Below, one piece after another: positions 5,628-59,900 of a stretch of 64,000 nucleotides of DNA. Under the pieces are notes generated by a model. The model saw only the letters and a program-made list of their open reading frames with translations. It did no database searches and was not told the DNA's origin. The position numbers were made by a program, and so were the translations under genes. Source of the stretch: Anolis carolinensis (lineage: Eukaryota). How positions within the stretch are numbered: the first letter of the stretch is position 1; every line of letters begins with the position of its first letter. The stretch spans positions 68,557,574 through 68,621,573 of the forward strand of contig NC_085841.1 of assembly GCF_035594765.1 (NCBI RefSeq), written 5' to 3'.

Positions 5628-5846
5628 GTGAATATACAGTGTAGAATCAATGTTGTTTGATACCACTTTCAGTGCCGTGGCTCGAAACTGTGAATTTTGA
5701 GTTTTGTAGTTGGTGAGACAAAATTACTCTTTTGCAGAGAAAGTTAAAGACCTTGTAAAATTACAACTCCCATAATTCTGTAGCAATGAGCCATGGCAAT
5801 TAAAGTGGTTTCAAACTGCATTAATTCTAAGTGCAGATGCACCCTT
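5628..5846. mobile_element. Palindromic MITE (non-autonomous DNA transposon)
   Basis: Ends are inverted (TACAGTGTAGAATCAATG..TTTGATACCACTTT / AAAGTGGTTTCAAACTGCATTAATTCTA..GATGCACC). Related copies at ~33553-33770, ~38690-38850 and ~60058-60226. Confidence 0.7.
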
Positions 5847-6130
5847 AGTGAAGAACTGTTACTTTATTCTGTTTAAACTTTTGTAAGCCACCTTGAGTGG
5901 GATAAAGGCAGAAAATTATTATTATCAGTAAAATAATGGTCTTGATGCACTTGGAATAGTTTTGGTGGACAAATCAAGCATAAAGCATGACAAGTGTGAG
6001 GCAACCATACAGCCAGTAAACACGGTGTGTACTTAAAGTAAACTTATATGCACTGATGATAGTGTTTCAGTTAAATTAAAATTTGAGATATATGGGAAAT
6101 AAAAAGGGATTTATCTTTGAGTATTCCTGA

Positions 6131-6410
6131 GGTCCCTTCTACACTGCCATATAAAATCCAGATTATCTGCTTTGAATTGGATTTTTTTTATCATGTCAGA
6201 AGTGAACATACTGTAAGTCGCTTCTGGTGTGAAAGAATCAGTAATCTACAAAGTCATTGCCCAGGGACACCTGTATGTGTTACCATCTTGTGGGAGGCTT
6301 CTCTCATGTCTCACTGGATTATATGACAGTATATACTCATATAATCCAGTTCAAAGATGATAATGTGGATTTTCTGCTTAGATAGTCTGGATTATATGGT
6401 AGTGTAGGGG
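6131..6410. mobile_element. PIF/Harbinger-like palindromic MITE interrupted by a SINE fragment (~6186-6311)
   Basis: TIR GGTCCCTTCTACACTGCCATATAA / TTATATGGTAGTGTAGGGG. The internal insert matches the SINE fragment at 55925-56051. Confidence 0.7.
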
Positions 6411-7479
6411 AGATGTGGGAATAGAAGGCTGGTGTGGCGAGTGTGAGGCAACCATACAGCCAGTAAAGATTGAAATGTCAGTATTTAGGGAAGAAAGAAA
6501 TAGATAAATGAACATGTTTTTCTTGGTAATGTATGGTAACTTTGAGTTCTTTTCAAGCTTCCAAGCAAAAGTTGAAACTAATTTGTTTCTTCTTTCTCCT
6601 AAAGTACCTTCAATTCTTAGTTACAATAAACCTCTATTCATTTCAGTGAAATAATCACCTGTAAGGTTCAGTGTTATTGCCCTAGAAAAATGCATCATCT
6701 TATTACAATTTGGAGAAAGCATTACAGCTGTGTGTAATAGCCCAGATCCTGTAAAAAAATTAAGCAGTTAAATTCAACACAACAGCTTTTCTCTATCAAA
6801 GTCTTAGGCATCAACGTTGCCTAGGTCTTTGTTAACTACCTCACATTCTCAGATCAAAAATCACAAGTTTACAGCAGGCAAGATTACAAAAGTTTGAGGT
6901 TTCAAATCCATGAAAGTAATCTTGGGAATATTTTTTTCAATAGTCTAAAGTAAAACTGCATGCACAAATTATTGTCAATGTTATAGGAAACTGCATTATA
7001 TGGTGCATGTAGACCCATACAGTACAGTCAAAGGTAGCTAAACTGCATTATATGAACCCACACTGACCATACTATGCAGTTTCAAACTGCATTATATGGC
7101 AGCATAGATGGGGCCGTAAATCGTCAGACTTGTTATAGGCTTGATAGTATTGAATTCAATAGCATGATGAGGGTATTCATTTACTCTAACCTCCAATGCA
7201 TCCCATATGGATTGCTGTATTTCATTCTATATTGGTATGCCTTAAAAATACAACTGGTCAAGTATACACTACAAGACCATTGATTGCAACCAGTTACACA
7301 AATAATATTGTCCCTTGTTAAAATCATTTCACATTCCTGGACATAACCAAAGTATTACTGTGGCTGATTGTTTAGAAGACTGTATTCTCCCACATAAACC
7401 TGCTCAGAACAACTCCAGAATGGGCCCCTTTCTGTGTCTTATCCCACATTTGATAGGGACGTAAGAGATACCTCTTTGG

Positions 7480-7710
7480 TGTTTAGATGGAAAATAGATT
7501 TCATCTAATCATTAAGATGAATTTCTTGACTGACAGAGCAGTTGGACTTTGGATAGACTGCCTCAGAGAATAATGAACTGTCCTTATTCAGGCATTTTGC
7601 AAATCAGAAATTGGGAATGCTACATATTTCAGGAATGCTTTAGTTGTGTACATCTCCATGACAAGAGGATAGACTAGATGGCCTTGCAGTCACTGCTGAT
7701 TCTATGATTT
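7480..7710 (+). mobile_element. Old, degenerate CR1 3' end
   Basis: Decayed RFHL..KNFLT.RAV coding segment, then GACTAGATGGCC..TTCTATGATT as in the young CR1 3' UTR at 59960-60050. Confidence 0.7.
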
Positions 7711-9894
7711 CATATTTTATTACTGCTCATTATATGCCTCTCATGACATATATCCAGTTGGCGACGAAACACATAAGTGATGAAAGCCTTACTTCTCTAC
7801 AAATTGACCTGTGATTATAAGACACAAATTTTACTTGATCTCTCCTGTCTTTGACCCCAGAAAGATCTCACGCAGCAACAATGAATAAAATAAATCCAAA
7901 GGTATAATCTAAAACATAAACAGATGACTAAAAAACATAAGACAACTGTAAAAAGCACTCATAAGGAGATCAATAAGGGAAAGAAAGAAAAGAAAGAATA
8001 ATGTATGGTGAGATTAAATCCTTTAGAAAGCCTTTGTTTTTCTAGTTTTACTTGGGCCCAAATTGGCACTGCTGAATTTGAATATTAATTGTTCCTTAAT
8101 AAGATACAATCATAAAACATGCAATTTAGTGCTTCGTTTCTTCCAATTTTCATACAGGAATCAAACTGTGCTAAACTAAAGGCTTTAATCCTCTTGGTTC
8201 TGCCTGTAACAAGCACTATAGTCTGTGAAGGGTTACCGACCCATAACAAATAAATTAATAAGCTTCAGTAATTATATCTGGGTCATTTTGTTTTAAACCG
8301 TGAAATCAAAAGCTCTCTTCCTATTAGTGCATTAGTGCAGGAACTGCTGTAACTGGCCATCGGTGCTCCCTTGATACACCATCTGTGAATATAACATAGT
8401 GGTGCATATTGGGTAGTGAAGCCTGTGTATAGATTAAAAGTGTGCAGCAATGTATTATGTTACTGAGAGTGGGCATAGGCATTTGGCTCCCCCCCCCCCC
8501 CACACACACACACTTTTATCATCCATTTTTTCCCTCCCTATTCATGAACTCAAGCTCTGGAGTTATTCTGCATCACTGATTTTTCCTCAACACAGATTGG
8601 GTGTTAGGATTCCCTGCTTTTAATATCGGACCTGGAGGAGGATTTATTCATCTGTGGCTAGTGTTGTATTGTGATGGATAGGAACATGAGAGATGTCAGA
8701 AAATCCCACTGACACACAACTGAGGCAGAGCAGAAAGGAAACGGAAGCTTGATGTGCTAAGAGGAGTGGCTGTAGATGAAGTTGCTGGTAGGTTAGAAAT
8801 ATCCAAACATCTGTTAGCAGCCTGCACAGGGCACTCCTGGACAGCCAACAGCTGCATATCAGGACAGAATTCTTTTCCACAAATACAACTAGGGAATAGA
8901 TGCTGGATGTGTCACTGTTATGTATCTTGATACCCCTTCTTTGAATGTAAATGTCTCCAAGTAAGACTTATTCATGTTCAGCATGCACATTCCTTGGCAT
9001 TCTATACAACCGACAATCCCACGAATTAAGCAATAGAAATCACTCTACCTATTTTCCACATTTTCTGCAGATGCCCACACTTGCTGCTGCTGCTGATATT
9101 TCTTACCTGTCTCTCCTTGAAGATCGACATTGTTAAAACACTTCAAAAAATTATATAAAATGCATATATTAAAATGTATTTCTATGAAATACATATTAAA
9201 ATATACAGTAATCCAAAGGACGTGAGTTTAAAATTCCAACAACTAATTTAGCTATTGGAGCTTTTCCAGCAGGTTATTCCACAATCTTGGAGTGGCCGAT
9301 AAAAAGGTTCTTTGGGTGATGGTTAGGGTTAGGGTTATACAAAGGTTCACAGAAGACAATATGGCCCTTATACAACCTGCTTATTCAAAGAAGGAGCTTC
9401 ACATGGTCAAACCACCTTCTTTCTTGGTGGGAATAGTGTAGAGTGCTTCTCCATGGCTGTTCCTACACTTTGAAACTCCATAAGAAGTCTAGGTGGTCCC
9501 TTTCTGTGTCTTTTGTGTCTATCCTGGATTTTGGGAAGCCTTCCCTCCATTCCAGCTGCCCCTGGGGGAGAGAAGAGCAATCAGTATCTTCTGGTCTTAA
9601 TTCCCTCCCTAATGATTGTCTACCTTTTCTTATATGTTTGTGTTGTTTTGGGGACAGAGAACTGTCAAACTAACAATTTGGAAGCTACTCTGGGAGACTT
9701 TTGGCTCAGAGGTGTTTTGAACTGCAGCATCCAGAAACCCTGATCATTGGCCCAGAGAACCTGAGGCCAAAACACCTGGAAGACTGGAATTTGGGGATCA
9801 CTGTGCTAAATAAATAAAGATAGATTTTCTGTTTTAGTGTTTTTAGTTTATACTATTAAATTAATGTGCTATATAGTTTTTAATCTATATACAG

Positions 9895-11113
9895 TTTCCT
9901 GCCCTGAATCCAGGACTGCTATTATTGCAAGCGAGGTTAAATGTTTTAGCTTCGATATAGCAATACTTCAGGAGACCTGGAGAGCAGGAAAGGGACAGCT
10001 GAAGGAAGAAAAAGGAGGCTACACCTTCTTTTGGAAGTGATTGCCTGAAGAAGAAAGAAGAATACATGGAGTTAACTTCGCTATCAGAAACAACTTGGTG
10101 AAGCACCTGTTCAAAACAGCCATTGGCATCAATTAATTACTCTCAACCTTCCGAATTAATCTTGCCAAAAACTATCAGTCAACGATCATAAGTACCTATG
10201 CAACAACACTAGAAGCTGGCAAAAATACCAAGGAAATTTTTTACTGTCAGCTGGACAGCATTCTATCAGAGATATTTAAGGAGGACAATATCCTCCTGGG
10301 AGATTTTAATGCATGAGCTTGATGAGACTTTGATCTGTGACCAGGGACCATAGGAAAAGATGGGGTTGGAAAGTAGCAACCCGACTGGTATCCTGCTTCT
10401 CACTAAATGTGAGAACATAACCTTGTCATAACAAAAACACTCTTCCACCAGAAAAACAAGTTTAAGACATCATGGAAGCACCACCGGTCAAAGCACTGGC
10501 ACCTCTTATGCTATGTAATTATACAAGCCAGACACAGCTGTGATGTGCTTCTCACAAGAGCCATGGCAGATGCTGAAGACTGCTGGACAGACCATGGGTT
10601 AATTCATTCCACAATGGTCATCAAAATTGTCTCCAAACACAGACTCCAAAGAAGAAAGATAAGTCTCAAAACAAACACCCAAGCATTTCAAGATCTCTCC
10701 AAATGAGCCCTTCTCCAAACAACATTCAAGGATCATCTACCCATAGAATACCCTTAATAACCTTAAAAACTTTAGCATAGACATCGAGAACTGGGAAGCT
10801 CTGGCCCATGAGTGCTCTAACTAGAGATCAGCTGTTACCAACAGTGCTGTGGAATTCGAAGAGACGCGAATGGAGGGCGAAGGGAGAAACTGTCAAGAGG
10901 AAGGTGCATCAAGCCAACCCTTTTTGGGACCACCTTCCATCTGGAAATCATTGCCCTCATTGCAAAAGAACATGCAGATCAAGTATAGGTCTCTCCAGTT
11001 ATCTACGGACCCACTGCCAAGACCCTACACTTGGCAGGCAATCATATTTTAACATGAGGGATTGCCTATGAATGAATGAATGAATGAATGAATGAATGAA
11101 TGAATGAATGAAT
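9895..11113 (+). mobile_element. RTE-clade LINE, internally deleted (APE endonuclease joined to C-terminal zinc finger)
   Basis: PESRTAIIASEVKCFSFDIAILQETWRAGKGQLKEEKGGYTFFWK, ILLGDFNA and TSWKHHRSKHWHLL are RTE-type APE motifs. Near 10755 the sequence jumps to LKNFSIDIENWEALA ... CPHCKRTCRSSIGLSSYLRTH, then a (TGAA)n tail at 11068-11113. Multiple stops. Confidence 0.85.
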
Positions 11114-12364
11114 CAAATTATTTTAATCTTTTTTGTTGTTTAAATATTATATATAGTTTTACTCTCATCTCTTTTTACTATATAAGCCACCTGAGGCTCA
11201 TCCTTGGGGAAAAGGTGGGATATAAACAGACTGATTGGAAAATGATTTGTTTGACCTAAATTTCAGTCATCAATTTGGAATTTTGAGAGATTGTAGCAGA
11301 AAATCAAGACAACAAAAGGTCTATTACCAATATTAACTTTAACTGTACATTTTTATCTTCAGTAGAATTATTTATGTTAACATAAATACATACTAAAATC
11401 TGAAAAGACATTTCAGACGATCCCATGCATCAACTATCAAGAAAACTCTGCAGTTCTGATCCATCAGAAGCCATATATTTCTGATGATGTAACTGAGATA
11501 ACTTAACATTGTCAGCTTTCCAAATGAAGTGTCTTGAATATTCTGTCAGTTAAAAGACACTACAGACAAGTCCATAAATAATTTTAGTCATTAGAGAGAT
11601 GTCTATGGGTGCAAATGTTCAGCCCATTTCTTTGCTGCCTTTACTTTCATTGATAATCAGTTTGAGGCTTAAGTAAGAAGAGAGTAGCCTTAGCAGTTCA
11701 TGATATGGCTTGTCTTTGCTGTAAGACACAGGAAGATGTCAGTCTTCTACGGGACAAAGGGACATCCTGCAAAATGCAGAGGAGTGACTGAAATATCATC
11801 TCATACTCTGGAACTATTCCAGTATACCAAGGATGCAAGGTCGTCTTAATCTCAAGTCCTTTTTTGGTTGTGTTGCACTTTGGGAGACCTATTCTGACTT
11901 AAAGAGGATATCAAGTTCAACTAAAGTAGCCTTGACGATTGACATTTGAAAGCTATCCAATCCAGCCTCTAACCAAACCAGACCTTCCTTGAATAACAAC
12001 ATCACGTCATTAACAATACACGTTCTTTCTCTTGCTGTTTTTCATATTAAACATTAGGAGGATATGCTATCACATGAGAATGCAACAGAGTGTTATTGGA
12101 AGAGATATACACTTTCAATGCAGTTTGACACATAAAAACATTAAAAATAACCAGTTGATGTGTTTGGGTTATGATATTACAGTGTTGTGATGCAAAATAT
12201 TGCATTTGTTCTATGTATGTAGTTAGGGACTGAGATACAAAGAAAATCTCTGTGAATACCTCAAAACTATGTTTCTATCCTTGTTGTGACTACAAATATC
12301 AGAACAATAAAATAGTCTGTAAAACAAACATAAATATGTGTCTGAATAAGTATGCATGTGTGTA

Positions 12365-33770: not shown

Positions 33771-35830
33771 AGACATAACCACTTAAACCTCCACCATTTA
33801 AAAGTATTTAATTACACAATCAATACTTCCATATAACTGCCTTGAGGACCCCAAGGCTTATTTTAACTTTTAAACCCCCTGAGTCCCCTTGGATCATCCA
33901 ATGACCTTATCACACACACACACACCCCAGGGCAGAAGTGTGCTGGCTCCATGTTGAGGAGGAAGTGTCCTAGGATGCTTGCCTGTTAGTTGCGGGTGAG
34001 GCCTCCACCGGAAACTCAAGGATGTCATATGATGGACTGTATGCCCATCCATCCCTCAACTGGGGCAGAAAATTCCTCATATGATGAGGTGCCTGCCTAC
34101 ACTAAAAAATAAACCCACAAGAACTGATGTTTCAATTTCTAGAAAGTTCCAAGAGTTTATGAGTAGGGTGCAACATTTTACTCTCTTGAAAGAAGTGGGA
34201 TAAAACATTTTAAAAATCAACATTTTCATGCCTGGCATTGCTCACAGTAACTGAAAAAATGCTGAAAATGGGGTTCTAAAGCATTAAAATTTGTCCATTT
34301 CCATAAAAGCTGCTGTCTCTGTGGTCCCTCTCCTATGCAGTACATCATTAAACCGAGCTGTGAACATGCTACTGTCTCTTACCACCAATCATGTTAGGGT
34401 ATTTATGTTCCCTGGAGATAGCATAGTAGTTATTTCACATACTTTTCATAGAATCATAGAAAAATAGAGTTGGAAGAGACCACATGAACCATCTAGTCTA
34501 ACCCCTTGTCATGCAGAAAGAGCACAAAGTACTTCTGATTACTGTGGCTTCTGGTTAGATAAACTAAAGCTTGGCAAGTTATGTTTCAACCCTACTCTGC
34601 CCATATGAGACATTCTAATATACCAGAGTTGAATTCTGTAAAGAATTTCACATTTTACAACATTGGCACATAAAGAGGTATCAGTCTCTCTTCAACAATG
34701 TCCCTGATATTCAGCTTCATGCTATACAGCTTTGTTTTGCTGTTTGCTGGTGTTCTTTGGTGTCATGAAGTTGACCCCCAACTTAATGGTGATGCCCTCA
34801 TTGGCTTTTCTTGGCAAGATTTATTGAGATAATGTTTGCCTTTGCCTCCTCTTTATGCTGACAGAATGTGATTCGCCCTAATGGGCTCTCAGCATCCTCT
34901 GATTCTGGCTCTCTCGGTTCACACCCAAAATTATCCCAACAATTCTGCAGCATTTTTGCTGGTTTACACTCTTTACAGAATTGGAACAGTTTCTCAAAAC
35001 AAACATTCCATTTGATGTGAATCCATGTTTTCTGTATGTGGGGATATGGCTAACAAGATAATGAGCAAAACAATAATCCACTATTACAATAATAAAGTGA
35101 TCACAAACATATACTTGTTCCCACAACTTATAAATGATGCAACAGTCATTGATATACAATGAAACATAAATTTGTTATATTCACAATGCTAATTGCTATT
35201 TCTTCCTTGTTGGAGAGAATTTCCAACAAAAGTGTCTTTAAACAGATTTCCTCTTTAAAGTAATAGTGTCTTTTTCTTTCTTGTAAAAGGAAATTTCCAA
35301 GAAAAGTTTGTATACACAGACTTTCCTCTATGCTTCCTTATGGAGAGCTTCCTCTTCCTTGTAGGGAACTTCCACAACCTGTTTTGACCTTAACAAAGTC
35401 TTCTTCAGGTGGAAAAGTTCTAATTTTACAAAATAAAGAGGGCCTAAAGGGAATGAACAAGAGTAGTTTCTTAATAGCACAAAACCCACATACCTCAGAC
35501 CCACATATCTCAAACATGCAACTTGCAAAGACAAAATTACTCACACCAAGTTCTCCTACATGATACTTTGTTCAGTTTGATTCCATAGTAAACACAAAAC
35601 TGTGAGACTGACTCTACTATTTAATATAGTAACACTTAAAGAGGCCAGGTGATGAAAAATGTAGTGTTGTAATTGTTGTTCTAAGATCACATTTAAAGAC
35701 CATACTCTTTAAATGTAAATGTAACTCATTGCACCTATAAAGTAACTCGGTTCTCCTTTGCAACATAACTTTTGGTGAAATATAATTTAATTGAAACAGA
35801 ATCCAGACAAAACAAGTGCTTGCCATATAG

Positions 35831-36697
35831 TGTGATGACTCATGGGCCTTGTAGTCCTGTTCCTAGTACTATTGTGGCAGACGAAGAGGAAAACATGGGG
35901 TTTTCGCCGGTTCAGCAAGAGCCGGAGTCTCTTCACCTGCAGGATGTTGATGTTTGTCCTCAAGAATTCAGCCAAACAGGCCTTGGGCAGAACTCCCCCC
36001 CGTTTCCCAGAAAAGAATCTTATTCCAGAGAAAGGGGAATCAGAGAAGCTCAACGGAGGAGTTTACGCATTGCTGCCAGAAATCAAGCTGATTAGGCTTG
36101 CTTCCCTTGGGAAATTCTAAGGAGTCACACATCTGGACAGAGTTGGGTTTCGCTTCTCGTTCTCTAGGGAAAGAGTTCTGTTGGCGGGAAAACGAGACCC
36201 AATATAGGTGGTTGGCGCGAGGAATTCTTTGCGGAGTCAATTGATCAGCTTCAGGAGAGAGATCGTGTGTGGACTTCGTATCCCAGTTCCTTGCTTCTCG
36301 GATCAAGTTTTCAAGCCTTGCCTAGCCTTGCAGTTTTACCACGGACCCTGCTCCACGCTCATGTTTTGCCTTTGTTTCCAGTTATGAATCTAGCCAAGAA
36401 TCAAGTTTAATTCCAGCCTTGTTGTCAAGCTTCATTGAACTCTAGGACTCTGCTAATTCCCCACACTATTGCTTGGCAAAGTGTGTGTCTCAGTCAAGTG
36501 GATTAAAACTTTGAACTCTAATATCTTATATTGGACAATACATTTTTGGACTATATTTGACCTCCTTTGAAAGGTCTGCTTCTGAACTATATTCTTCACT
36601 TGTTTTTATTGCTTTTATATATTTCTTTAATAAAGATATTAGATAGAGATTGGCCTCTGCGTATGGTTATTGGTGCTCTGCTGCCAGGGTTCTGACA
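35831..36697 (+). mobile_element. Solo LTR, Ty3/Gypsy-like (copy 1)
   Basis: TGTGA...TGACA termini; 5-bp TSD TATAG/AATAG (1 mismatch); TATA-like AATATAGG near 36200; AATAAA at 36629-36634. Homologous to 37309-38255 and 53890-54754. Confidence 0.9.
35832..36095 (+). CDS. Conserved LTR (U3)-encoded ORF, copy 1 (VMTHGPCSP...SPPF...RRSLRIAARNQAD)
   Basis: Open from LTR base 2, ATG at 35835. Protein motifs are conserved across three diverged LTRs through synonymous changes. Translation not demonstrated. Confidence 0.6.
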   Translation: MMTHGPCSPVPSTIVADEEENMGFSPVQQEPESLHLQDVDVCPQEFSQTGLGQNSPPFPRKESYSRERGIREAQRRSLRIAARNQAD

Positions 36698-36704
36698 AAT
36701 AGGG

Positions 36705-36916
36705 TCCTAATCTGGGGATGGAGGTGTGTCAATCAGTTTTGCACAGGGTTACACACCCCCTCAAAGACTGTGTTCACAGTTTGGGAGTGCTATTGGATCC
36801 GTCTCTCCAAATGTCAGCCCAGGTAGATGCAATAGTCAGTAGTGTTTACTATCAACTTTGGTTGACCCGTCAGCTGGGCCCCTTCCTAGATTTGAAGGAC
36901 TTTAAGATAGTAGTGT

Positions 36917-36917: not shown

Positions 36918-36948
<31 letters not shown>

Positions 36949-37010
36949 TTTAGATGAATGTGTGTTTTAGCAATGTTGTAACTTGCCACGAGCCATGAGA
37001 AGAGGCGGGC

Positions 37011-37065
<55 letters not shown>

Positions 37066-37308
37066 ATACAAAAAAAGTAGCTTGTTTCAGGTAAGTACAC
37101 TGCTGATCATGCTAAGAAATAAATGCCCCTGAGAAATAAATTCCCATTCAGTGAGTTGGATCCAAAGCTAGGTCCATACAACTAGGTGGGAAACATCGTA
37201 TATTTTCAGCAGCCTGAAGAGACTCCTCCCATTGACAGTCTTTCCAGCCTATTGTAAACAATTCATAGATGTTTGGGTGACTGAGATGAATGGATTGAGC
37301 AAGTTGGT

Positions 37309-38255
37309 TGTGATGACTCATGGGCCATGTAGTCCCGTTCCTAACGCTGTTGTGACAGAGGAAGAGGAAAACTTGGGTTTTCCACCATTTCAGCCAGAAT
37401 TGGAACTTTCCCAGCCTGAATTGGAGCCCTTGCACCTGCAAGAGGTTTGCCTTCCAGAAATCTGCCAAACAAGCCCTGAGTCAGAATCTCCCCCATTTTC
37501 TCGCCGTAGTTATTATCAACAACAAAAAGGAGTTCAGCAGGCTAATCGCAGAAGCCTGAGAATCGCAGCCAGGCATTCAGCTGATTAAGACTGCTTCCAT
37601 GAGAAATTCTAGGGAGTCATGCATCTGGACACAGAGATTGACTTTCGGTTCTGATTCCCCAGAGAAGTGTTCTTTGGTGGGAAAACGAGACCCTATTTAG
37701 GTTCCTTGCCCCGAAGGAATCTTGCGGAGTCAATTCGTCAGCTACTGGAGTAGGCTGTGTGTGGACAGCGCTATTCCCGTTTCCAAGCCTCGTTCCTGTT
37801 TCCAAGCCTTCGTTCACGTTTCCAGCCTTGTTTCTGCTTCACGGACCTTGCCTTGTTTCCTAGGACTCAGCCTTGCCTTCCAGGACCTTGCCTTGCTTCC
37901 CGGACCTTGCCAAGTAATTTACCACGGATCTTGTCCCTGTTCCTCGTTCCTTGTTGCCTTGAATCAAGTTATTTCCTTGCCTTGCCTAAGTTTCATGGAC
38001 TAAAGGACCTTGTCATCTCCCCTCACTTTGCCTGGCAAAGTGAGTGTTTCGGTTACTGGATTACAACTTTGGACCTTACTATTTCATATTGGACATTGTT
38101 TTCCTGGACTATATTTGACCTTTCCTGAAAGGACATCTTCTGAACTATATTCTACACTTATTTTTATTGCCTTTACTTATTTCCTTAATAAAGATATTAG
38201 ATAGATTCTGGCCTCTGTGTATGGTTATTGGTGCTCTGCAGCCTGGGTCGTGACA
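37309..38255 (+). mobile_element. Solo LTR, Ty3/Gypsy-like (copy 2)
   Basis: TGTGA...TGACA termini, perfect 5-bp TSD TTGGT, AATAAA near 38187. Confidence 0.93.
37310..37588 (+). CDS. Conserved LTR-encoded ORF, copy 2
   Basis: VMTHGPCSPVP...SPPFSRR...RRSLRIAARHSAD*. Contains an in-frame 21-bp tandem duplication (QPELELS/QPELEPL). Confidence 0.6.
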   Translation: MMTHGPCSPVPNAVVTEEEENLGFPPFQPELELSQPELEPLHLQEVCLPEICQTSPESESPPFSRRSYYQQQKGVQQANRRSLRIAARHSAD

Positions 38256-39742
38256 TTGGTGTGCTTGAAAATCACAACGGAAAGACAATTTTTTTTAATT
38301 TTTTTTATTGTGAAACATATTTTCCAAAAGTGATACATTAAAAAGTGGGGGAACAATCTGTAGGGATAGAAAAGTAGGAATAGAAAAGTAACGGAAGGCC
38401 AATCTCGATCACAATCAGAAGACTTCATATGGCCAAGCAAAACTGTAGATAAGAGTGAAGGACTTCGGCCCAGAAATACCATAGTTTTGAGCCTGAGGTT
38501 CTAGAAAATGTCTACAGAGAACATAATTTGTTAAACATGGTTAAATGTAACCACCAATACTGGCCCTGTGGCTACGGGGATCATATTGCATATCTACTTA
38601 TATGGGAATAAGCCAAATGAAGCTTAATGAGAATAAGCCTAATAAAGCTCAATATTTCTGAACAGAAGTTTACAGGACTGCTATGGTAAAATAATTTTCC
38701 CTTTAAAACAATGACCCAACTTTTCAGATATTCTGGGGTTTGTAGTTTAGTGAGGTACTGAAGCTCTTGTGTTGAGAAATAGAAATGTCCTTCTGTGAAC
38801 TGCAAACCTAGAACTCCATATGTTGTTGCCATAACAGTTAAAGTGTTATAGGTTTGTAGATTTCCTAGGAATCATAGGGCTATAATTGTCTTTTCAAAAG
38901 ATAGATTTACCAAAAAAAATCAGATACTTGGTTTGGACAGGAATGGAAAGCAGACAGAATAAAAGTTGAACCAAATGCACACCAGACATCAATTAAAAAT
39001 GCAAACATTTCAGCCACTTCACATAGATAATGCTTTAACAAAAAGCTTTTATCTACTTGAAGTGACTGAAATATTTCCATTGCATTACTAATGACTCCAA
39101 TCCACTTGTAAGCCTCTGATATAAGCTGCATTAATTCACTTGACTGTCAGTTCTGTTTCTGCTTTCAATTTCTGCCTAAAGCCCTCTGTGCCTATATGGT
39201 TCCATAGGCATACATGGGCCTAAGACGCCTCAGTCTGGGTTCCCATTTCGCTATATCCCACAGTTCTCTGCACTGAACTAGTTTGTGTGAAATAGGAATC
39301 CACAACTGTGTAGGGGATTTCCAGTGAAAACATTACAATTATATAACTGTAGTCAAAAAGACTCTCTCAGTAGTTGGTCATTAAGGTAATTCATGGTTAC
39401 GTTTGTAATAAAATGATGTCTTTCCACATTAACAATGCTAGAACTGAAGTGTTCAAAGGATCTATCCAGAAATTTCCCATGAGGAGGTAATAAGTATGTT
39501 GCAATAATACCTAGTATTTACAGTGCTTTCCTGTGTTCAAAAATCCCCATGCACATTAGCTCAAAAATTCTTACCAAAGCTCTGTGGAGCAAGAACGGAT
39601 TGTTTTGCCTATATTGCAAAATGGCAGATGAAGTATATTACTACCAATTGAGATTTAGACCAGATCTTCTTAAGTTCACTTCCCAGCCTGTTTCTTACAT
39701 CGGTTTTCAATTCAACCTGGAGTTTCACTGGATGCTTGTTAG

Positions 39743-39789
<47 letters not shown>

Positions 39790-42505
39790 TTAATTACTTA
39801 TTAATTGTCCTCCATCCACGATGCTCTAGGCGATTTACAAGATAAAATTGTAAAGGATAACAATACATACATAAAAATATTAATAAAATTAACATAGATT
39901 AAAAGCTCTAGTAAAGAGCCAGGTCTTGAGTGCTAGGGTAAAAGGCCCTAACTCACACATGGCTCTCATATAGGGCGGCAAGGCATTCCAATAAGGCAGG
40001 GGCAGAAATAGAAAAAGCTCTGGGTCTGGTCCTTTCCAAATGCACTTCTCTAGGACCCGGTACATAAAGTAAGTCTTGTTGGGATGGTCGTTGCGACCTC
40101 CGATGATGGGAGAAGGAGAGACGGTCCCTAAGGTACGATGGGCCCTGGCCATAAAGAGTTTTCAAAACTAGCATCTTATATAGACCACGGTAATCCATTG
40201 GAAGCCAATGCAGATGCTGTAGCACTGGTGTTATGTGGCATTTCATGGGTGTTCTTGTGAGTAGCCTGGCTGCCGCATTCTGAACAATACGGAGCTTTTG
40301 GGTCGTGGATATCGGAAGGCCAACATACAGGGCGTTGCAATAGTCCAGCCTAGACGTGACCGTGGCATGGATGACTGTTGCCAGCGCCTCATCAGATAGA
40401 TAGGGTGCCAGTTGCCTCGCTTGTCGTAGATGGAAAAAGGCCTGTTTGCTGGCAGCAGCGACCTGAGCTTCCATTGTCAGCTGCGAATCTAAAACGACAC
40501 CCAGGCTCTTAACGGTAGGTGAAGGAGATAGGGCAGCACCATCGAAAGTGGGTAGCAAATGGGTCAGACCGGTTGAGCGGCCATGCCAGAGAATCTCGGT
40601 CTTCGCCGGGTTCACCTTCAGTCTGCTAGCACGTAGCCAGTTCGACAGAGCCTCCAGACATAAGGTGAAATTGTCTGGTATTGACGTTGCTCCAGGCTCC
40701 AGGCGCAGAAGGAGTTGGGTGTCGTCCGCATATTGATAGCAGTCTAGGCCGAAACTCCGAACCAAACTAGCAAGGGGTCTAACGTAGATGTTGAAGAGAA
40801 GAGGGGAGAGAATTGCACCTTGGGGTACCCCACATAGGAGGGGAGATCTGTCAGAGACTTGATCCATATACTCCACGCATTGGCTCCGGTTTCGCAGAAA
40901 TGAGTTGAACCAATTGAGGGCCTGACCGCGAACTCCGGACATGGCGAGACGGTGAATCATTAGATCGTAGTCAACGGTGTCAAACGCTGTGGTAAGGTCG
41001 AGAAGTACCAGTAGCGCTGATCCGCCGCTATCAGACTGGCGACGAAGTTCATCTGTAATGGCAACCAGGACTGTCTCCGTCCCATGGCCAGGGCGGAAGC
41101 CTGACTGGAAAGGGTCCAGGCTGGCTGTATCCTCCAGAAATTGTTGCAATTGTCCCAGTACAGCCCGCTCTATCATCTTACCCAAGAATGGGAGGTTGGA
41201 GACAGGACAATAGTTGGCAAGGGTCATGGGATCCAAGCTAGGCTTTTTTAGCAAGAGACGAACCCTTGCCTCTTTTAGATTGTCCGGGAAGACCCCCTGT
41301 TCAAGAGAGCCATTGATGATATTACTCAACGGATCGAGTAGACCTTTCAGGCAGCTCTTCACCAGCCAGGAGGGACACGGATCAAGGGAACAGGTGGTTG
41401 GTTTTGCAACAGCCAGGATTCTAGCGACATCTTCCCTGTCAAGTGGAGTAAATCGGTCAAAGATAGGCCCACTAAGCGGCCACAAAGTCTCAAGCTCACT
41501 CAAGGTATCAACTGTAGGGGGCAGTTCCTGCCGAAGCACGGTGATTTTATCAGTGAAAAACTTCTGGAATGCCTCTGCTGTAAGAGCCGTGGTTGCTGGG
41601 TTTTGGACTAAGGGAGCCGCACTGGTCAAAGCACGAACGATTTTGAATACTTGAGCTGGGTGCGATCTAGCAGAGGCTATTAAAGAGGAATTGTAAGATT
41701 TTTTAGCATCCTTGACGGCTGATTCGTAGGACCTGCGAAAAGCCTTGAAAGCGGACAGTGACACCTCGTCGGGTTTCCGTCGCCACCGATGTTCCAGCCG
41801 CTTTCGTGCTTGCTTCATCATCCGCAGCTCATTAGTGTACCAGGGGGAGCAATTCCGGTGAGGGCGAAGGAGGCGTCTGGGGGCAATCTCATCCAAGGCA
41901 GCCAACAAACTGACATTCCAGGTGTTGACTAGCTCATTGAGAGTGACGCACACAGCTCCCAGGCCTTTAAGGGCATTCAAGAACCTAGCAGGTTCCATGA
42001 GTCTCCTGGGCCGAGCAAAGATTGGTGTGGCAGGATGGGGAGGAGGAGATGGAATCTCAATCCGGGCCTTCAGGACAGCGTGATCAGACCAGGGAACATC
42101 AATTACCGCGGATAGAGATGTTCGTACTCCGATATTAAAAATCAGGTCCAGAGTGTGGCCGGCCCAATGAGTAGGGCGAGTCTTGAGTAGTGAGAGCCCC
42201 AGAGCTTCAAAGGTTGGTACTATGTCCTTAGTCACAGATGAAGATGGCAGTGCTTCGACATGTACATTAAAGTCACCCAGAACAATAAGTCTGGGGAACT
42301 TCAGGACCCAGTCCGCCACAAGATCTAATAAATTCAGCAGACTCTCTCCCGGAGACCCAGGCGTGCGGTAAACTACAAGAATGGCTAGGGATTCCATGCT
42401 AGCCAGGACCACACCAACACACTCAATACCGGCTATCTTTGGAGTTGGAATAGCTTTGATGTTAAAATAATCACGGGAGAGTATTGCTACCCCTCCACCC
42501 CTCCT
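39743..42505 (-). mobile_element. L2-clade LINE, 5'-truncated, young
   Basis: APE and RT coding region, short 3' UTR and a (GAT)n tail (TCA repeat at 39743-39789). Truncated at RGGGVA within the endonuclease. Confidence 0.93.
39953..42412 (-). CDS. L2 ORF2 (partial APE endonuclease plus reverse transcriptase), 819 aa
   Basis: VYRTPG, LGDFN, GHTLDL, WSDH (APE); QSGFRPGHGTET, GVPQGAILSPLLFNIY, YADDTQL (RT); SRLDYCN, LHWLP. Frameshift near 39990; the normal end WNALP...LKTWLF is in another frame. Confidence 0.9.
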   Translation of the reverse strand: MVLASMESLAILVVYRTPGSPGESLLNLLDLVADWVLKFPRLIVLGDFNVHVEALPSSSVTKDIVPTFEALGLSLLKTRPTHWAGHTLDLIFNIGVRTSLSAVIDVPWSDHAVLKARIEIPSPPPHPATPIFARPRRLMEPARFLNALKGLGAVCVTLNELVNTWNVSLLAALDEIAPRRLLRPHRNCSPWYTNELRMMKQARKRLEHRWRRKPDEVSLSAFKAFRRSYESAVKDAKKSYNSSLIASARSHPAQVFKIVRALTSAAPLVQNPATTALTAEAFQKFFTDKITVLRQELPPTVDTLSELETLWPLSGPIFDRFTPLDREDVARILAVAKPTTCSLDPCPSWLVKSCLKGLLDPLSNIINGSLEQGVFPDNLKEARVRLLLKKPSLDPMTLANYCPVSNLPFLGKMIERAVLGQLQQFLEDTASLDPFQSGFRPGHGTETVLVAITDELRRQSDSGGSALLVLLDLTTAFDTVDYDLMIHRLAMSGVRGQALNWFNSFLRNRSQCVEYMDQVSDRSPLLCGVPQGAILSPLLFNIYVRPLASLVRSFGLDCYQYADDTQLLLRLEPGATSIPDNFTLCLEALSNWLRASRLKVNPAKTEILWHGRSTGLTHLLPTFDGAALSPSPTVKSLGVVLDSQLTMEAQVAAASKQAFFHLRQARQLAPYLSDEALATVIHATVTSRLDYCNALYVGLPISTTQKLRIVQNAAARLLTRTPMKCHITPVLQHLHWLPMDYRGLYKMLVLKTLYGQGPSYLRDRLSFSHHRRSQRPSQQDLLYVPGPREVHLERTRPRAFSISAPALLECLAALYESHV

Positions 42506-52948: not shown

Positions 52949-53889
52949 AATTGTTCTTTAACATTTATACCCTATTAGTATTAACTGGTGTAAGCTGTCC
53001 CATACTGGGAAAAGGTAGATTACAAATAGATATAAAAACATCTGAGTGAATGGAACTGACCCATTTATATAAATAAAAAGGTAATGTCCATTTGTGGGAC
53101 CTCATATCTTCCAAACTATTTCACCAATTGCTACGAAATTTGGGCACAACGTAGCATTTAAACTGTTGAGTGTTTCAAGGTATTCACATACTTACTATCA
53201 CAAGCCTATCACACCTCAGACAGGTAAAACCATGCCCCTTAGCAATGGCCAATCTGTTGCACCCCTAGGCTACAGAGGCACTTCAAAATCACACTGGAGC
53301 CCCAGAATATGAGCAAAGCAAGCTGTTTATTGAAGATTATATGCAAGCAGTAGCAAATCAAGGTTCAAAGTAAATGAAATAAGGTTTAAATCCACAAGGT
53401 AGAAAATACTCGGGAATCTTGAAGCAAGACACAGAAGACACAGAAGATCTGAGTCCAAACAGGATATCAAAATTAGTCCAAACAAGGTATCGAAATTAAT
53501 CCAAGGCACAGGATCAAACTGGAATGCAGGAGACAAACCTCAAAGTTTAGTCCAAGGGACAGGATCAATGCTAGAACACAAGGCAGGATCTTGACTGGAA
53601 CAGGAATCCAAACTGCAAACTGCTGGAATACTAACTGGATATCCAAAAATCTCCAAAGACAAGGACAAGTCTGGAACAAGACTCAAGGCACAAGGCTGCA
53701 TGAATTGACATGGAAGTTCACAGAAACATGGAGCATGAAGCAGGGATCTCTCTCTCAATGAGCAATGTTACTACCTCTGAATCTCTCACAGAAAACAGTG
53801 TCTCTTAAAAGTAAACTCAAGGCCTTTTTCCGTGGGAGGTCTGCTCATTCTTCTTTCTCAATAACAATCTCTGGCAGCGCCGAAAACCC

Positions 53890-54754
53890 TGTCATGCTCA
53901 AGGCAGCGGAGCACCAAGAACCATACACGGAGGCCAATAAACTATCTAATATCTTTATTAAGGAAATATATAAGAATGATAAAAACAAGCAGAAAATATA
54001 GTCCAGAAGCAGACCTTTCAAATGAGGTCAAATATAGTCCAGAAATAGTTTGTCCAATAAATGATATTAGAGTCCAAAGATAAAATCCAATAAACCGAAA
54101 CACACACTATTGCCAAGCAATAGTGTGGGGAATTGTCCAGGGTCTTTCAAGGTCCAAGGTAAAATCCACAACAAGGCTGGAAACAAAACTTGATTCTAGG
54201 AACAAGGTCCGTGACTATGAACAAGGCAAGGCAATTCTTGAATACTTGAATAAGCAAGGCAAGGAAACTGGATTTGCGAACTTTGCGAAGTCCACACAAG
54301 GCTGGAACATGATTTCACTCCTGAAGCTGCTCTGTTGTCTCCACACGGAATCAACCGTGCCAGGCACCTTTAACTGGGTCTTGTTTTCCCGCCAAACAGG
54401 TGTCCAGCGATCTCTTTCCCTAGAGAACGGGAAGCAAAACCCAACTTTCCAGATGTGAGACTCCCTGGATTTTCCCAGGGGAAACATGGCTAATCAGTGT
54501 CTTGTTTGGCTGCAATTCTTAAACTCCTGCGAACCCGCTCTTTCACTCCCCTGTCTGCAGCAAAGGACTGTCTCCTAGCGAAGGGAGGTGAGAGCTGTTC
54601 AAGGTCTGTTTTAATGGGCTCTTGGGCAAGAACATCAACATCAAGCATCTGGAAGGATTCCGGCTGTTGTTGTTCCGGAGAAAACCCCATGTTTTCATCT
54701 TCGTCAGCCACAGTGACACTAGGAGCGGGACTACAAGGCCCATGAGGCATCACA
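53890..54754 (-). mobile_element. Solo LTR, Ty3/Gypsy-like (copy 3, nested)
   Basis: Minus-strand TGTGA...TGACA with a perfect 5-bp TSD AACCC. Homologous to copies 1 and 2. Confidence 0.93.
54490..54753 (-). CDS. Conserved LTR-encoded ORF, copy 3
   Basis: VMPHGPCSPAP...SPPFARR...RRSLRIAAKQDTD*. Same length (88 codons) and LTR register as copy 1. Confidence 0.6.
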   Translation of the reverse strand: MMPHGPCSPAPSVTVADEDENMGFSPEQQQPESFQMLDVDVLAQEPIKTDLEQLSPPFARRQSFAADRGVKERVRRSLRIAAKQDTD

Positions 54755-55430
54755 AACCCTCCCTTTCTCTTCTGTGCTGATAAATCACTTTCTTTTGGTC
54801 AAGCTCATTAGCCTTATCACAACTAGAATCCCCATCTGGCAAAAGAAAGTCTGACCTTGACTCCTTCAAGGAATGTAGTTCAAGCTGCTGGCTTGAAACC
54901 ATTGTTTGCCTGTTCCCAGAATCCTCCAAACCAAGCTCTGGCTGCATAGGAATCTCAGGCTCAAACTCAGAGTCCTTTGACAAGTCAGGTGCAGTAGCAA
55001 TCTCAGGTGTAGGAGCAAACACAGAGTCAGGAGCAGGAGCAATCACAAGTTGAACAGGCCCAACCTCAGGTCAGGCTACAACACAATCAGTCTCCTCCTC
55101 CCTAAGCAACTGTCGAGGCATATGGCTTCTCCCCTTAGCAATGGTGCTAGCAATGGCCAATCATTCTCCTCCCTTTAGCAACCGGCATGGGTGGGGCTGC
55201 AAGGGATGGCTAGGCCCACCTCCTTGCCACTCAGTTCAGCTTGGCGATTTATGCAAAGCTGAAGCTCTGTGGCCTAGCCACGGAGAGGAGGGATACTGAG
55301 AGTTAAAATCCTTTTTTTGAGCTCCAGCAAGATGAATGAGAAAAACCACTACTGTACTTATTATATTCTTATAAGTTTATTACATTATTATTATATTTTA
55401 TTATTATAGTTATTATATTATTATATTATA

Positions 55431-56979: not shown

Positions 56980-59900
56980 AGATTTGGGTAAAAGACACAA
57001 TGGAACTACAAGGGAATAGATAAAAGTCTGGTCAGACTCACAAACCTCATCAGGCGCACTTTAAACCAGATCCACTATATTACCCACAACCATAGGGTAC
57101 TGCCAAAAGGCTAAACGGAGGGCTGCACAAACACAGCAAGGACCAAGTACAGAGAGCACAATAATCTCAAATAAACAGCCCGGGGGGAGGTCACAGGGGC
57201 TTACATGTCTTTACACTAAGGCACAGAGCATGGGAAATAAGCAAGACAAACTCCAATTCTTAGCACAGCACCACACATACGATGTCATAGGCATCACTGA
57301 AACCTGGTGGGATGACTCCCATCACTGGAATTTAGCCATTGAGGGCTATAACCTCTTTCACAGAAATAGAACAAAGGGGAGAGGAGGGGGAGTAGCTTTA
57401 TATGTCAAAAACAGTTAAGTTGCAGAAGAAATGCAAGACTATAATCCGGGAAACCAGCTTGAAAGCATCTGGATAAGAATCAAGGGAACCGGGACTCAAA
57501 AAGATCTTGTTGTGGGTGTCTCTACTACAGACCTCCGAGTCAGGATGAAGGACTTGATGAAGCCTTCTGTCAACAGCTGACCAAACAGGCACAAAGAAGA
57601 GATATAGTAGTCATGGGTGATTTCAACTATCCCGATATCTACTGGAAAACAAACTCGGCCAAGAGTACAAAGTCCAACAAATTCCTCACTTGCCTTGCAG
57701 ACAATTTTATGGTCCAGAAGGTAAAAGAGGCAACAAGGGGATCGGCTACTCTTGATCTAATCTTAACAAATGTGGAAGACCTGATCAATAAAGTCGAAGT
57801 GGTCGGATCCTTAGGGGCAAGTGACCATGTGCTCCTGCAGTTTGCCATACAAAGGGAGGCTGAAACTAAGACAAGTCAAACACGCATTCTGGACTTTAAG
57901 AGAGCTGACTTCCAAAAAATGAAGGAATTACTGAGTGGCATTCCATGGACACCAATATTAAAAAACAAGGGAGTTAAGGATGGATGGGAGTTTTTCAAAA
58001 GTGAAATACTCAAGGCGCAAATGCAAACAGTGCCAACAAAGAAGAAAAATAAGACAAGTGCAAAGAAGCCAGAATGGATGTCCAAAGAACTTCTAACTGA
58101 GCTAAGAGTCAAAAGAGACATGCACAAGAAGTGGAAAAGGGGAGAAATCATCAAAGAAGAATTCAAACGTATAGCCAACTCCTGTAGGGAAAAGGTTCGC
58201 AAGGCTAAAGAGCAAAATGAGCTCAGGCTTGCCAGGGACATAAAAAACAACAAAAAAGGCTTTTTTGCTTACGTTGGTAGAAAAAGGAAGAACAAGGAGG
58301 TGATAGGGCCACTGCGAGGAGAAGATGGGGTGATGGTGACAGGGGACAAGGAAAAGGCAGAACTACTTAACGCCTTCTTTGGCTCGGTCTTCTCACAAAA
58401 AGAAAGCCATCTTCAATCTCAGCAACATGGAATGGACGTAGGATTGGGGGAAATCCAACCCCAAATAGGGAAACAAGTTGTCCAGGAACACCTGGCCTCT
58501 CTAAACGAATTCAAGTCCCCAGGGCCAGATCAGCTACATCCAAGAGTATTGAAGGAGCTAGCAGAAGTTATTTCAGAACCACTGGCAATTATCTTCGAGA
58601 GTTCTTGGAGAACAGGAGAAGTCCCAGCAGATTGGAGGAGGGCGAATGCGCTCCCTATCTTCAAGAAGGGAAAAAAGAACGACCCAAACAATAACCGTCC
58701 GGTCAGCCTCACGTCGATACCAGGCAAGATTCTGAAAAAGATCATTAAGGAAGTGGTCTGCGAACACTTAGAAACAAATGCGGTCATTGCTAATAGTCAA
58801 CACGGATTTACCAAAAACAAGTCATGCCAGACTAATCTGATCTCTTTTTTCGATAGAGTTACAAATTGGGTTGATATAGGGAATGTTGTGGATATAGTGT
58901 ACCTGGATTTCAGTAAGGCCTTCGTCAAAGTCCCCCACGACCTTCTGGCAAACAAACTAGTAAAATGTGGGCTAGACAAAACTAGGTGGATCTGTAATTG
59001 GCTAGGCGAACGAACCCAAAGGGTGCTCACCAATGCGTCGTCTTCATCTTGGAAAGAAGTGACAAGTGGAGTGCCACAGGGCTCCGTCCTGGGCCCGGTT
59101 CTGTTCAACATCTTTCTTAATGACTTAGACGAAGGGTTAGAAAGGACGATCATCAAATTTGCAGACATCAACAAACTGGGAGGGATAGCTAACACTCCAG
59201 AAGACAGGAGCAGAATTCAAAACGATCTTGACAGACTAAAGAGATGGGTTGAAACTAACAAAATGAAGTTCAACAGGGACAAATGCAAGATACTTCACTT
59301 CGGCAGAAAAAATGGAATGCAAAGATACAGAATGGGGGACGATGCCTGGCTCGACAGCAGTACATATGAAAAAGATCTTGGAGTCCTCGTGGACAACAAG
59401 TTAAACATGAGCCAACAATGTGATGCGGCAGCTAAAAAAGCCAATGGGATTCTGGCCTGGATAAATAGGGGTATAGCATCTAGATCCAGGGAAGTCATGC
59501 TCCCCTCTATTCTGCCTTGGTCAGACCACACCTGGAATACTGTGTCCAATTCTGGGCACCGCAGTTGAAGGGAGATGTTGACAAGCTGGAAAGTGTCCAG
59601 AGGAGGGCAACTAAAATGATTAATGGTCTGGAGAACAAGCCCTATGAGGAGCGGCTTAAAGAGCTGGGCATGTTTAGCCTGCAGAAGAGAAGGCTGAGAG
59701 GAGACATGATAGCCATGTATAAATACGTGAGGGGAAGTCATAGAGAGGAGGGAGCAAGATTGTTTTCTGCTGCCCTGCAGACTAGGACACGGAACAATGG
59801 CTTCAAACTACAGGAAAGGAGATTCCACCTGAACATCAGGAAGAACTTCCTCACTGTGAGGGCTGTTCGGCAGTGGAACTCTCTGTCCCCGACTGTGGTG

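Follow-up and report, generated by a model that had tools for sequence, protein, structure and literature searches.

What is encoded by an open reading frame (ORF) that begins at the second base of a long terminal repeat (LTR) and is found again, at the same place, in LTRs which have otherwise diverged? This question is raised by three repeats in a stretch of 64,000 nucleotides from Anolis carolinensis (assembly GCF_035594765.1, contig NC_085841.1, positions 68,557,574 to 68,621,573 of the forward strand), which we call the window. An initial annotation, made from the letters of the window, had described them as Gypsy-like solo LTRs with a protein-coding frame in their U3 region, and the label turned out to be right, as judged from their target duplications and from a domain scan of a full-length relative at another locus, L001. 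The solo LTRs belong to a Ty3/Gypsy retrotransposon of A. carolinensis that bears a chromodomain, a vertebrate chromovirus. As to the frame itself, we conclude with high confidence that it is no independent ORF and represents the C-terminus of the Pol/integrase protein, the last 85–90 residues of which are encoded in U3.

The reading frame at the LTR start

Read from LTR base 2, the three LTRs remain free of stops over 87, 92 and 87 codons, after which each has a TAG or TAA at the homologous position, just as had been annotated. The codon comparisons put forward at that time were reproduced to the letter. The peptide RRSLRIAAR is written cgg agg agt tta cgc att gct gcc aga in copy 1 and cgc aga agc ctg aga atc gca gcc agg in copy 2, with eight of nine codons and 10 nt differing and the amino acids staying the same, and SPPF is spelled tcc ccc ccg ttt, tct ccc cca ttt and tca cct ccc ttc in the three copies. 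Copy 2 also has the in-frame 21-bp duplication described for it (QPELELS / QPELEPL), which together with a 6-bp loss gives a net gain of 15 bp. For the three pairs of window copies the ratio of non-synonymous to synonymous change (dN/dS, Nei-Gojobori) is 0.28, 0.34 and 0.30 in this frame, and the other five frames are either close to 1 or rich in stops: four of them show ratios of 0.6–1.9 with 2–11 stop-containing codon columns per pair, and the antisense frame that has its wobble positions in common with the coding frame reaches about 0.4, as expected, yet contains 5–9 stops. The observed ratio was reached in none of 2000 shuffles of the alignment columns, and Fisher tests of synonymous versus non-synonymous change in six pairs gave p values from 2.6e-10 to 2.5e-4. 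Insertions and deletions (indels) respect the same phase, being 6, 15 and 6 nt long inside the ORF, all multiples of three, and mostly 1, 2, 7, 11 or 13 nt downstream of it. As the nucleotides of the ORF are less conserved (58–82% identity) than the rest of the LTR (65–87%), simple sequence conservation cannot account for the open frame.

Variation over the genomic copies follows the codons as well. Logan contigs of four public runs were aligned to LTR copy 1 at 80% likeness, and each DNA run yielded more than 11,000 contig pieces that match this copy, which shows that the LTR family is very abundant. Indels with a share of at least 10% are absent from the ORF and amount to five downstream of it, each of 1 nt. 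The list of variants comprises the 40 best-supported of 91 sites and is therefore a partial sample; among those listed, 15 common variants are located in the ORF, of which 11 fall on the third codon position (binomial p = 0.002), and the 25 downstream variants split 11/9/5 by the same phase, without any codon signal.

These results bear directly on the possibility that the region is not translated at all and that frame and motifs have been conserved as a by-product of DNA or RNA constraint on U3, for example by enhancers or integrase-binding sites. U3 must hold promoter elements too, and a partitioned analysis revealed low synonymous change in the first 11 codons (VMTHGPCSPVP; proportion of synonymous differences, pS, 0.12–0.37), as expected at the end of an LTR. 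The constraint on these codons thus lies largely on the DNA, the LTR end being recognised by the integrase. From codon 12 onward, however, pS amounts to 0.3–1.0 (0.5–1.0 in most pairs), with synonymous sites near saturation, and replacement sites are held (proportion of non-synonymous differences, pN, 0.03–0.48), which is clearest for copy 3 and the full-length element of L001 (pS 0.50, pN 0.10). Together with the indels in threes found only inside the ORF, the family-wide variants on third positions and the lower nucleotide conservation of the ORF, the codon-phase tests already contradict an untranslated region, and we give it hardly any credence. The initial claim of a coding segment in U3, with selection on the peptide in the active lineages, is therefore supported by dN/dS, indel phase and the genomic copies, whereas the conservation of the HGPCSP start is more readily explained by constraint on the DNA of the LTR terminus.

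Full-length elements and the end of pol

No full-length element is present within the 64-kb window. One is contained in L001, a locus on the Anolis chromosome record CM069370.1 that was reached via a related gene model, where it extends from 4938 to 11200 with LTRs starting at 4938 and 10336 (98.8% identical to each other). Its domains are arranged in Gypsy order, namely DUF4939, zf-CCHC (gag), aspartyl protease, RVT_1, RT_RNaseH, Integrase_H2C2, rve, SH3_Tf2-1 and Chromo, and the DUF4939 domain is typical of Sushi/RTL-type gags. The ORF at 9767–10588 extends from the SH3-like domain, by way of the chromodomain and a purine-rich tract, across the LTR start at 10336 and through 83 codons of U3, where it ends in RIRRSARIAAKQETD at a stop in common with window copy 3. 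The LTR junction reads ..gat agT GTG ATG.., and as LTR base 1 completes a Ser codon of pol in third position, the frame from LTR base 2 is the pol frame. In 41 contigs of DNA run X1 the polypurine tract GGGGGGGGCCTTGAGGAGGGGG likewise stands directly before the LTR start.

Read-through is also found among annotated proteins. A profile of the three tail peptides, searched against 1.84 billion protein representatives, gave six matches, of which four (P0001, P0002, P0003 and P0005) include the tail as a whole or in part; P0004 and P0006 were rejected as relatives of the tail, since they are repeat-protein noise. P0005, a UniProt protein of A. carolinensis, has a chromodomain followed by ...GLEEGDS-VMSHGPCSPVPSTIVADEEENFGF, and the UniProt Anolis proteins P0017, P0018, P0019 and P0021 (507–517 residues) have rve, SH3, Chromo and the tail in one single frame and carry ...GLEEGDS-VMTHGPCSP...RRS[AL]RIAAK. 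According to the type of tail, P0019 resembles copy 1, P0017 and P0021 resemble copy 2 and L001 resembles copy 3, so that each subfamily of the window has a full-length counterpart that reads through into the LTR. Chromo (PF00385) was detected in the L001 ORF and in P0005, P0009 and P0017–P0021, and the alignment shows that the residues of the aromatic cage of the chromodomain (F, W and Y/F) are all kept.

The same layout was found in the amphisbaenian Rhineura floridana. Locus L002 has two LTRs, beginning at 5638 and 10579 and 99% identical to each other, and an ORF from 9749 to 10843 reaches 88 codons into the LTR (U3 tail L002:10579-10843). A TATAAG box follows about 30 nt after its stop codon, so that about 90% of U3 upstream of the box is coding, and as the corresponding share in copy 1 of the window is about 70%, a large part of an animal LTR is protein-coding. 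The tail of Rhineura is acidic and then basic and ends in KRGRPVSLRPKR, with an RGRP core resembling an AT-hook. We rejected its identification as an AT-hook, as the likeness is a resemblance only and found no support in a Pfam scan (E up to 10). The extension behind the chromodomain sets this lineage apart: a set of 78 chromodomain integrases ends at a median of 10.5 residues past the chromodomain, and the values are 102–117 residues in the lizards described here and 107–117 in the Anolis proteins. The nearest relatives from outside the lizards are amphibian and metagenomic chromodomain integrases with 50–60% identity. Two chromodomain integrases from metagenomes, P0122 and P0097, extend more than 110 residues past the chromodomain, are rich in Pro and Ser there and end in ...TTTR[ST]GRVSRP..., so that long tails of this kind are not limited to lizards.

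In the full-length element the pol frame thus runs through the integrase core, the SH3-like domain and the chromodomain into the polypurine tract, which encodes G-L-E-E-G-D-S, and on through 83–98 codons of U3. As the genomic RNA has U3 at its 3' end, the tail would be made as the C-terminus of Pol/integrase, and as reverse transcription copies U3 into both LTRs, the tail is present in every LTR, solo LTRs included. Its frame and its motifs have been kept by selection in the active lineages. Genes in U3 are known from retroviruses, namely sag of mouse mammary tumour virus and nef of human immunodeficiency virus, each of which is an ORF of its own with a separate start and RNA, and the lizard LTR is similar to them in having coding sequence in U3, which is thereby promoter and gene at once. 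A separate small protein like sag or nef, made in addition to the Pol terminus or instead of it from the ATG at LTR bases 5–7 via a spliced or subgenomic RNA, nevertheless seems improbable to us. This ATG is codon 2 in all Anolis copies and in Rhineura, but it lies within the LTR terminus, which is under strong constraint at the DNA level, and in every full-length copy the frame is continuous with pol, without a stop from the chromodomain to the tail. In contrast to sag and nef, the lizard frame is the end of pol.

The tail and its terminal motif

Between the Anolis subfamilies the integrase, SH3 and chromodomain parts have an identity of about 90%, as estimated by eye from the alignment, and the three window tails show pairwise identities of 59–61%. 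The tail grows by in-frame duplications, as expected of a disordered linker, and in an AlphaFold2 model of SH3, chromodomain and tail (alignment of six rows, mean predicted local distance difference test score 43) it is not confidently folded. It looks like a fast-evolving disordered linker with short conserved motifs, which are, in order, an acidic run leading to N-[M/L/F]-G-F, SPPF and the C-terminal RRS[A/L]RIAA[K/R]. A homologue search for the tail region of the 273-residue ORF gave no match in the length range searched, which says nothing about longer or shorter kin.

The C-terminal motif resembles the sequences with which other proteins bind to nucleosomes. For the HMGN core RRSARLSA the residues RRSAR have been seen on the H2A–H2B acidic patch by cryo-electron microscopy, tardigrade Dsup has a motif of the same type with RRSSRLTS (PMC12487698), and in yeast Dot5 (RRSARIAT) three arginines are needed for nucleosome binding that depends on the acidic patch (PMC13347269). 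The core R-R-S-x-R-[L/I] with its three arginines is present in the three window copies and in L001, and it reads RRSLRIAA in all three window copies and RRSARIAA in L001, P0018 and P0002. The latter form, as found in L001, agrees with Dot5 in seven of eight residues and with HMGN in six of eight. Among 236,342 six-frame codons of the DNA examined the pattern is confined to LTR tails, and it arises in 138 of 200,000 shuffles of the tail. The lizard motif therefore has the pattern R-R-S-x-R-[L/I]-x-[A/S/T] in common with HMGN, Dsup and Dot5, including the three arginines by which those proteins contact the patch, and it differs from them in that only the core of 8–9 residues is shared and in its position at the extreme C-terminus of a retrotransposon integrase.

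It is this match to proven binders of the acidic patch that leads us to propose, if only tentatively, docking of the integrase complex on the nucleosome acidic patch as the most likely function of the tail. RRS[A/L]RIAA[K/R] would insert its arginines into the H2A–H2B acidic patch as do HMGN, Dsup and Dot5, the tail would dock the integrase complex on nucleosomes beside a chromodomain reading methylated H3K9, and this docking would help to choose or to hold the integration target. The proposal in its full form, by which the tail behind the chromodomain would be an HMGN-type acidic-patch anchor, the first known in a retrotransposon integrase, with U3 serving as a swappable targeting cassette, is one that we hold still more loosely. 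If true, such a U3 cassette would be fast-evolving, being HMGN-like in Anolis, AT-hook-like in Rhineura and a CR motif in the plant CRM elements. A full-text literature search, with most subscription journals outside its coverage, found no paper tying an HMGN-like motif to a retrotransposon integrase.

Several observations weigh against the picture of a translated Pol terminus that docks on nucleosomes. Translation of the tail is suggested by the continuity of the frame and by selection, pol of L001 is broken by a frame change near 8705–8958 and by an in-frame stop at 9752–9754, and among the DNA examined no element is fully intact. The motif match covers 8–9 residues and was noticed after the fact, and it is a resemblance and not membership in the HMGN family. 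Position 4 of the motif is Leu in the window copies versus Ala or Ser in the proven binders, two UniProt copies, which may be decayed, read RRNLR and RQSLR, and the RRSxR motif is absent from the tail of Rhineura L002. A Pfam scan of seven tails with E up to 10 gave no match, HMG14_17 included, and neither a PDB sequence search with the tail nor a feature search of the ESM Atlas gave a match, or in the latter case a usable one. Moreover, the last 30 residues of the AlphaFold model form a low-confidence helix, whereas HMGN binds in an extended form.

It is also well conceivable, though we would not count on it, that the tail is a real Pol C-terminus with some other job, such as nuclear import, binding of a host factor, integrase stability or processing, or nucleic-acid binding. 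In the version with a host factor, the acidic N-x-G-F or SPPF would act as a tether of the LEDGF/TND type (TND, TFIIS N-terminal domain) or of the Ty5 type, and the acidic G-F stretch and SPPF are indeed as conserved as the basic end. Acidic linkers with FxGF are known to bind TFIIS N-terminal domains, but two phenylalanines are required for this (PMC9987994) and the first of them is Asn in every copy. A LEDGF/TND-interacting motif was rejected for this reason, as all copies show N-[M/L/F]-G-F with the first Phe of FxGF replaced; an acidic run D/E-E-E-E is present in the tail, and the quality of the AlphaFold model is too low for an adjoining helix to be recognised. Since the end of the Rhineura tail is AT-hook-like and not HMGN-like, the basic end may simply bind DNA. 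However, there was no Pfam match to an AT-hook or anything else, and the exact spacing of R-R-S-x-R-[I/L] has been held through saturated synonymous change. With respect to docking on the acidic patch, which is the function that we propose, the way in which LTR retrotransposons select their integration sites has been worked out in no more than a handful of cases, and the lizard tail provides a conserved peptide that is short, can readily be synthesised and has a specific and falsifiable candidate partner. As a candidate nucleosome-docking motif it is worth a bench test.

Precedents, gene models and other features of the window

The closest precedent is that of the plant CRM chromoviruses, in group A of which the 3' LTR encodes the CR motif (Neumann et al. 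2011, PMC3059260; Weber et al. 2013, PMC3605345). Both are Ty3/Gypsy chromoviruses with a gag-pol frame that continues past the polypurine tract and with a putative targeting domain at the integrase C-terminus that is encoded by the 3' LTR, and the termini of their LTRs resemble each other as well (TGATG..CATCA in CRM and TGTGATG..TGACA in the lizard). In CRM, however, the CR motif replaces the chromodomain, whereas in the lizard element a full chromodomain still precedes the polypurine tract and the U3 tail comes in addition; moreover, its host is a vertebrate and its tail carries the HMGN-like motif. From A. carolinensis itself the chromovirus Amn-ichi is cited in PMC2774666 as having been described in 2009 (Piskurek et al. 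2009, Gene 441:111). Amn-ichi and the V-clade chromoviruses of vertebrates are likened to our element by its traits, namely those of a chromodomain-bearing Ty3/Gypsy element of A. carolinensis.

C-terminal tethers are also known from other integrases and include the tail of murine leukaemia virus, which binds BET proteins, the targeting domain of Ty5, which binds Sir4, and the chromodomains of Tf1 and MAGGY, which bind methylated H3K9. As proposed for the lizard tail, they are short and often disordered C-terminal modules of the integrase that fix the complex to chromatin, but they are encoded in the internal region of the element and the lizard tail in U3. We know of no report of an HMGN-type arginine anchor for any of them. 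Viral binders of the acidic patch have been described with LANA of Kaposi's sarcoma-associated herpesvirus and with the chromatin-binding sequence of foamy virus Gag (review PMC9040877; PMC12125541). Tethering of a virus or mobile element by an arginine anchor on the acidic patch is what the lizard tail, by our proposal, would have in common with them; in foamy virus the motif is located in Gag and not in the integrase, and the sequence pattern is another one.

A coding U3 matters for the annotation of LTRs and for their dating by a neutral clock, and also, in squamate genomes, for the interpretation of LTR-derived 'enhancers' and of gene-model exons. A ready in-frame peptide exists in thousands of solo LTRs, and gene predictors already splice it into host proteins (P0001–P0003). 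P0003 (151 residues) starts with roughly 60 residues from the LTR tail, read in the tail frame, and these are fused to a C19orf12-like domain; either a solo LTR has been exonised or the annotation is an artefact. P0001, with a reverse transcriptase of a long interspersed nuclear element (LINE) and the tail, and P0002 are chimeric gene models like P0003. In P0007 (A. carolinensis, 190 residues) a retrotransposon chromodomain is joined to an apparent HP1-type chromoshadow domain (precomputed Pfam PF01393), and this is likely a mis-joined gene model. P0024 from Salvator merianae (466 residues) is a gene model with an integrase core followed by ...PRRSSRLQGIPPPK..., which includes RRSSRL as in Dsup; its sequence past rve looks spliced and may come from another gene.

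Table 1. Features of the three solo LTRs, in positions of the window
Feature	Position	Strand	Remarks
Solo LTR copy 1	35831..36697	+	867 bp, TG..CA ends
Target duplication of copy 1	35826-35830, 36698-36702		TATAG, AATAG
Tail ORF copy 1	35832..36095	+	87 codons + stop; fossil copy of Pol/integrase tail; subfamily of UniProt protein P0019
Acidic stretch DEEENMGF	35880..35903	+	copy 1; ends N-M-G-F; conserved in all copies
SPPF motif	35994..36005	+	copy 1; kept through synonymous changes
RRSLRIAAR, HMGN-like arginine motif	36054..36080	+	copy 1; best conserved tail peptide
TATA-like box	36201..36208	+	downstream of stop codon in copy 1, read from sequence; putative promoter function
AATAAA polyadenylation signal	36629..36634	+	copy 1; kept in all three copies
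Solo LTR copy 2	37309..38255	+	947 bp; exact target duplication TTGGT, 37304-37308 and 38256-38260
Tail ORF copy 2	37310..37588	+	92 codons + stop; subfamily of P0017 and P0021
RRSLRIAAR copy 2	37547-37573	+	
Solo LTR copy 3	53890..54754	-	865 bp; exact target duplication GGGTT, 54755-54759 and 53885-53889
Tail ORF copy 3	54490..54753	-	87 codons + stop; subfamily of full-length element in L001
RRSLRIAAK copy 3	54505-54531	-	

The hallmarks of a complete LTR, namely TG..CA ends, a TATA-like box, AATAAA and a 5-bp target duplication, are found in all three copies (Table 1), and as the target duplications are separate, the three are independent solo LTRs. They have their first 27 nt in common (TGTGATG[A/C]CTCATGGGCC.TGTAGTCC) with 0–1 mismatch, 0 being expected by chance, and a 3' block is conserved across them as well. 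In the contigs of the public runs the depth goes up and down at the borders of copy 1. The flanks of this copy (35814–35830 and 36701–36713) are also joined without the LTR in contigs of all four runs, the joints skipping 874–898 nt, which means that the flank is itself a repeated sequence with other copies that have no insertion. LTRs 1 and 2 have the same orientation and are 611 bp apart, each with its own target duplication and hence independently inserted, and such a close pair may hint at a preferred target region. Between them (AAT)n at 36918–36950 faces (ATT)n at 37019–37062, with about 70 bp of unique sequence in the middle. The long ORFs of the window are LINE reverse transcriptases of 819 residues (39953–42412, minus strand) and 651 residues (57613–59568, plus strand), both with RVT_1 and endonuclease-reverse transcriptase domains and unrelated to the LTR family.
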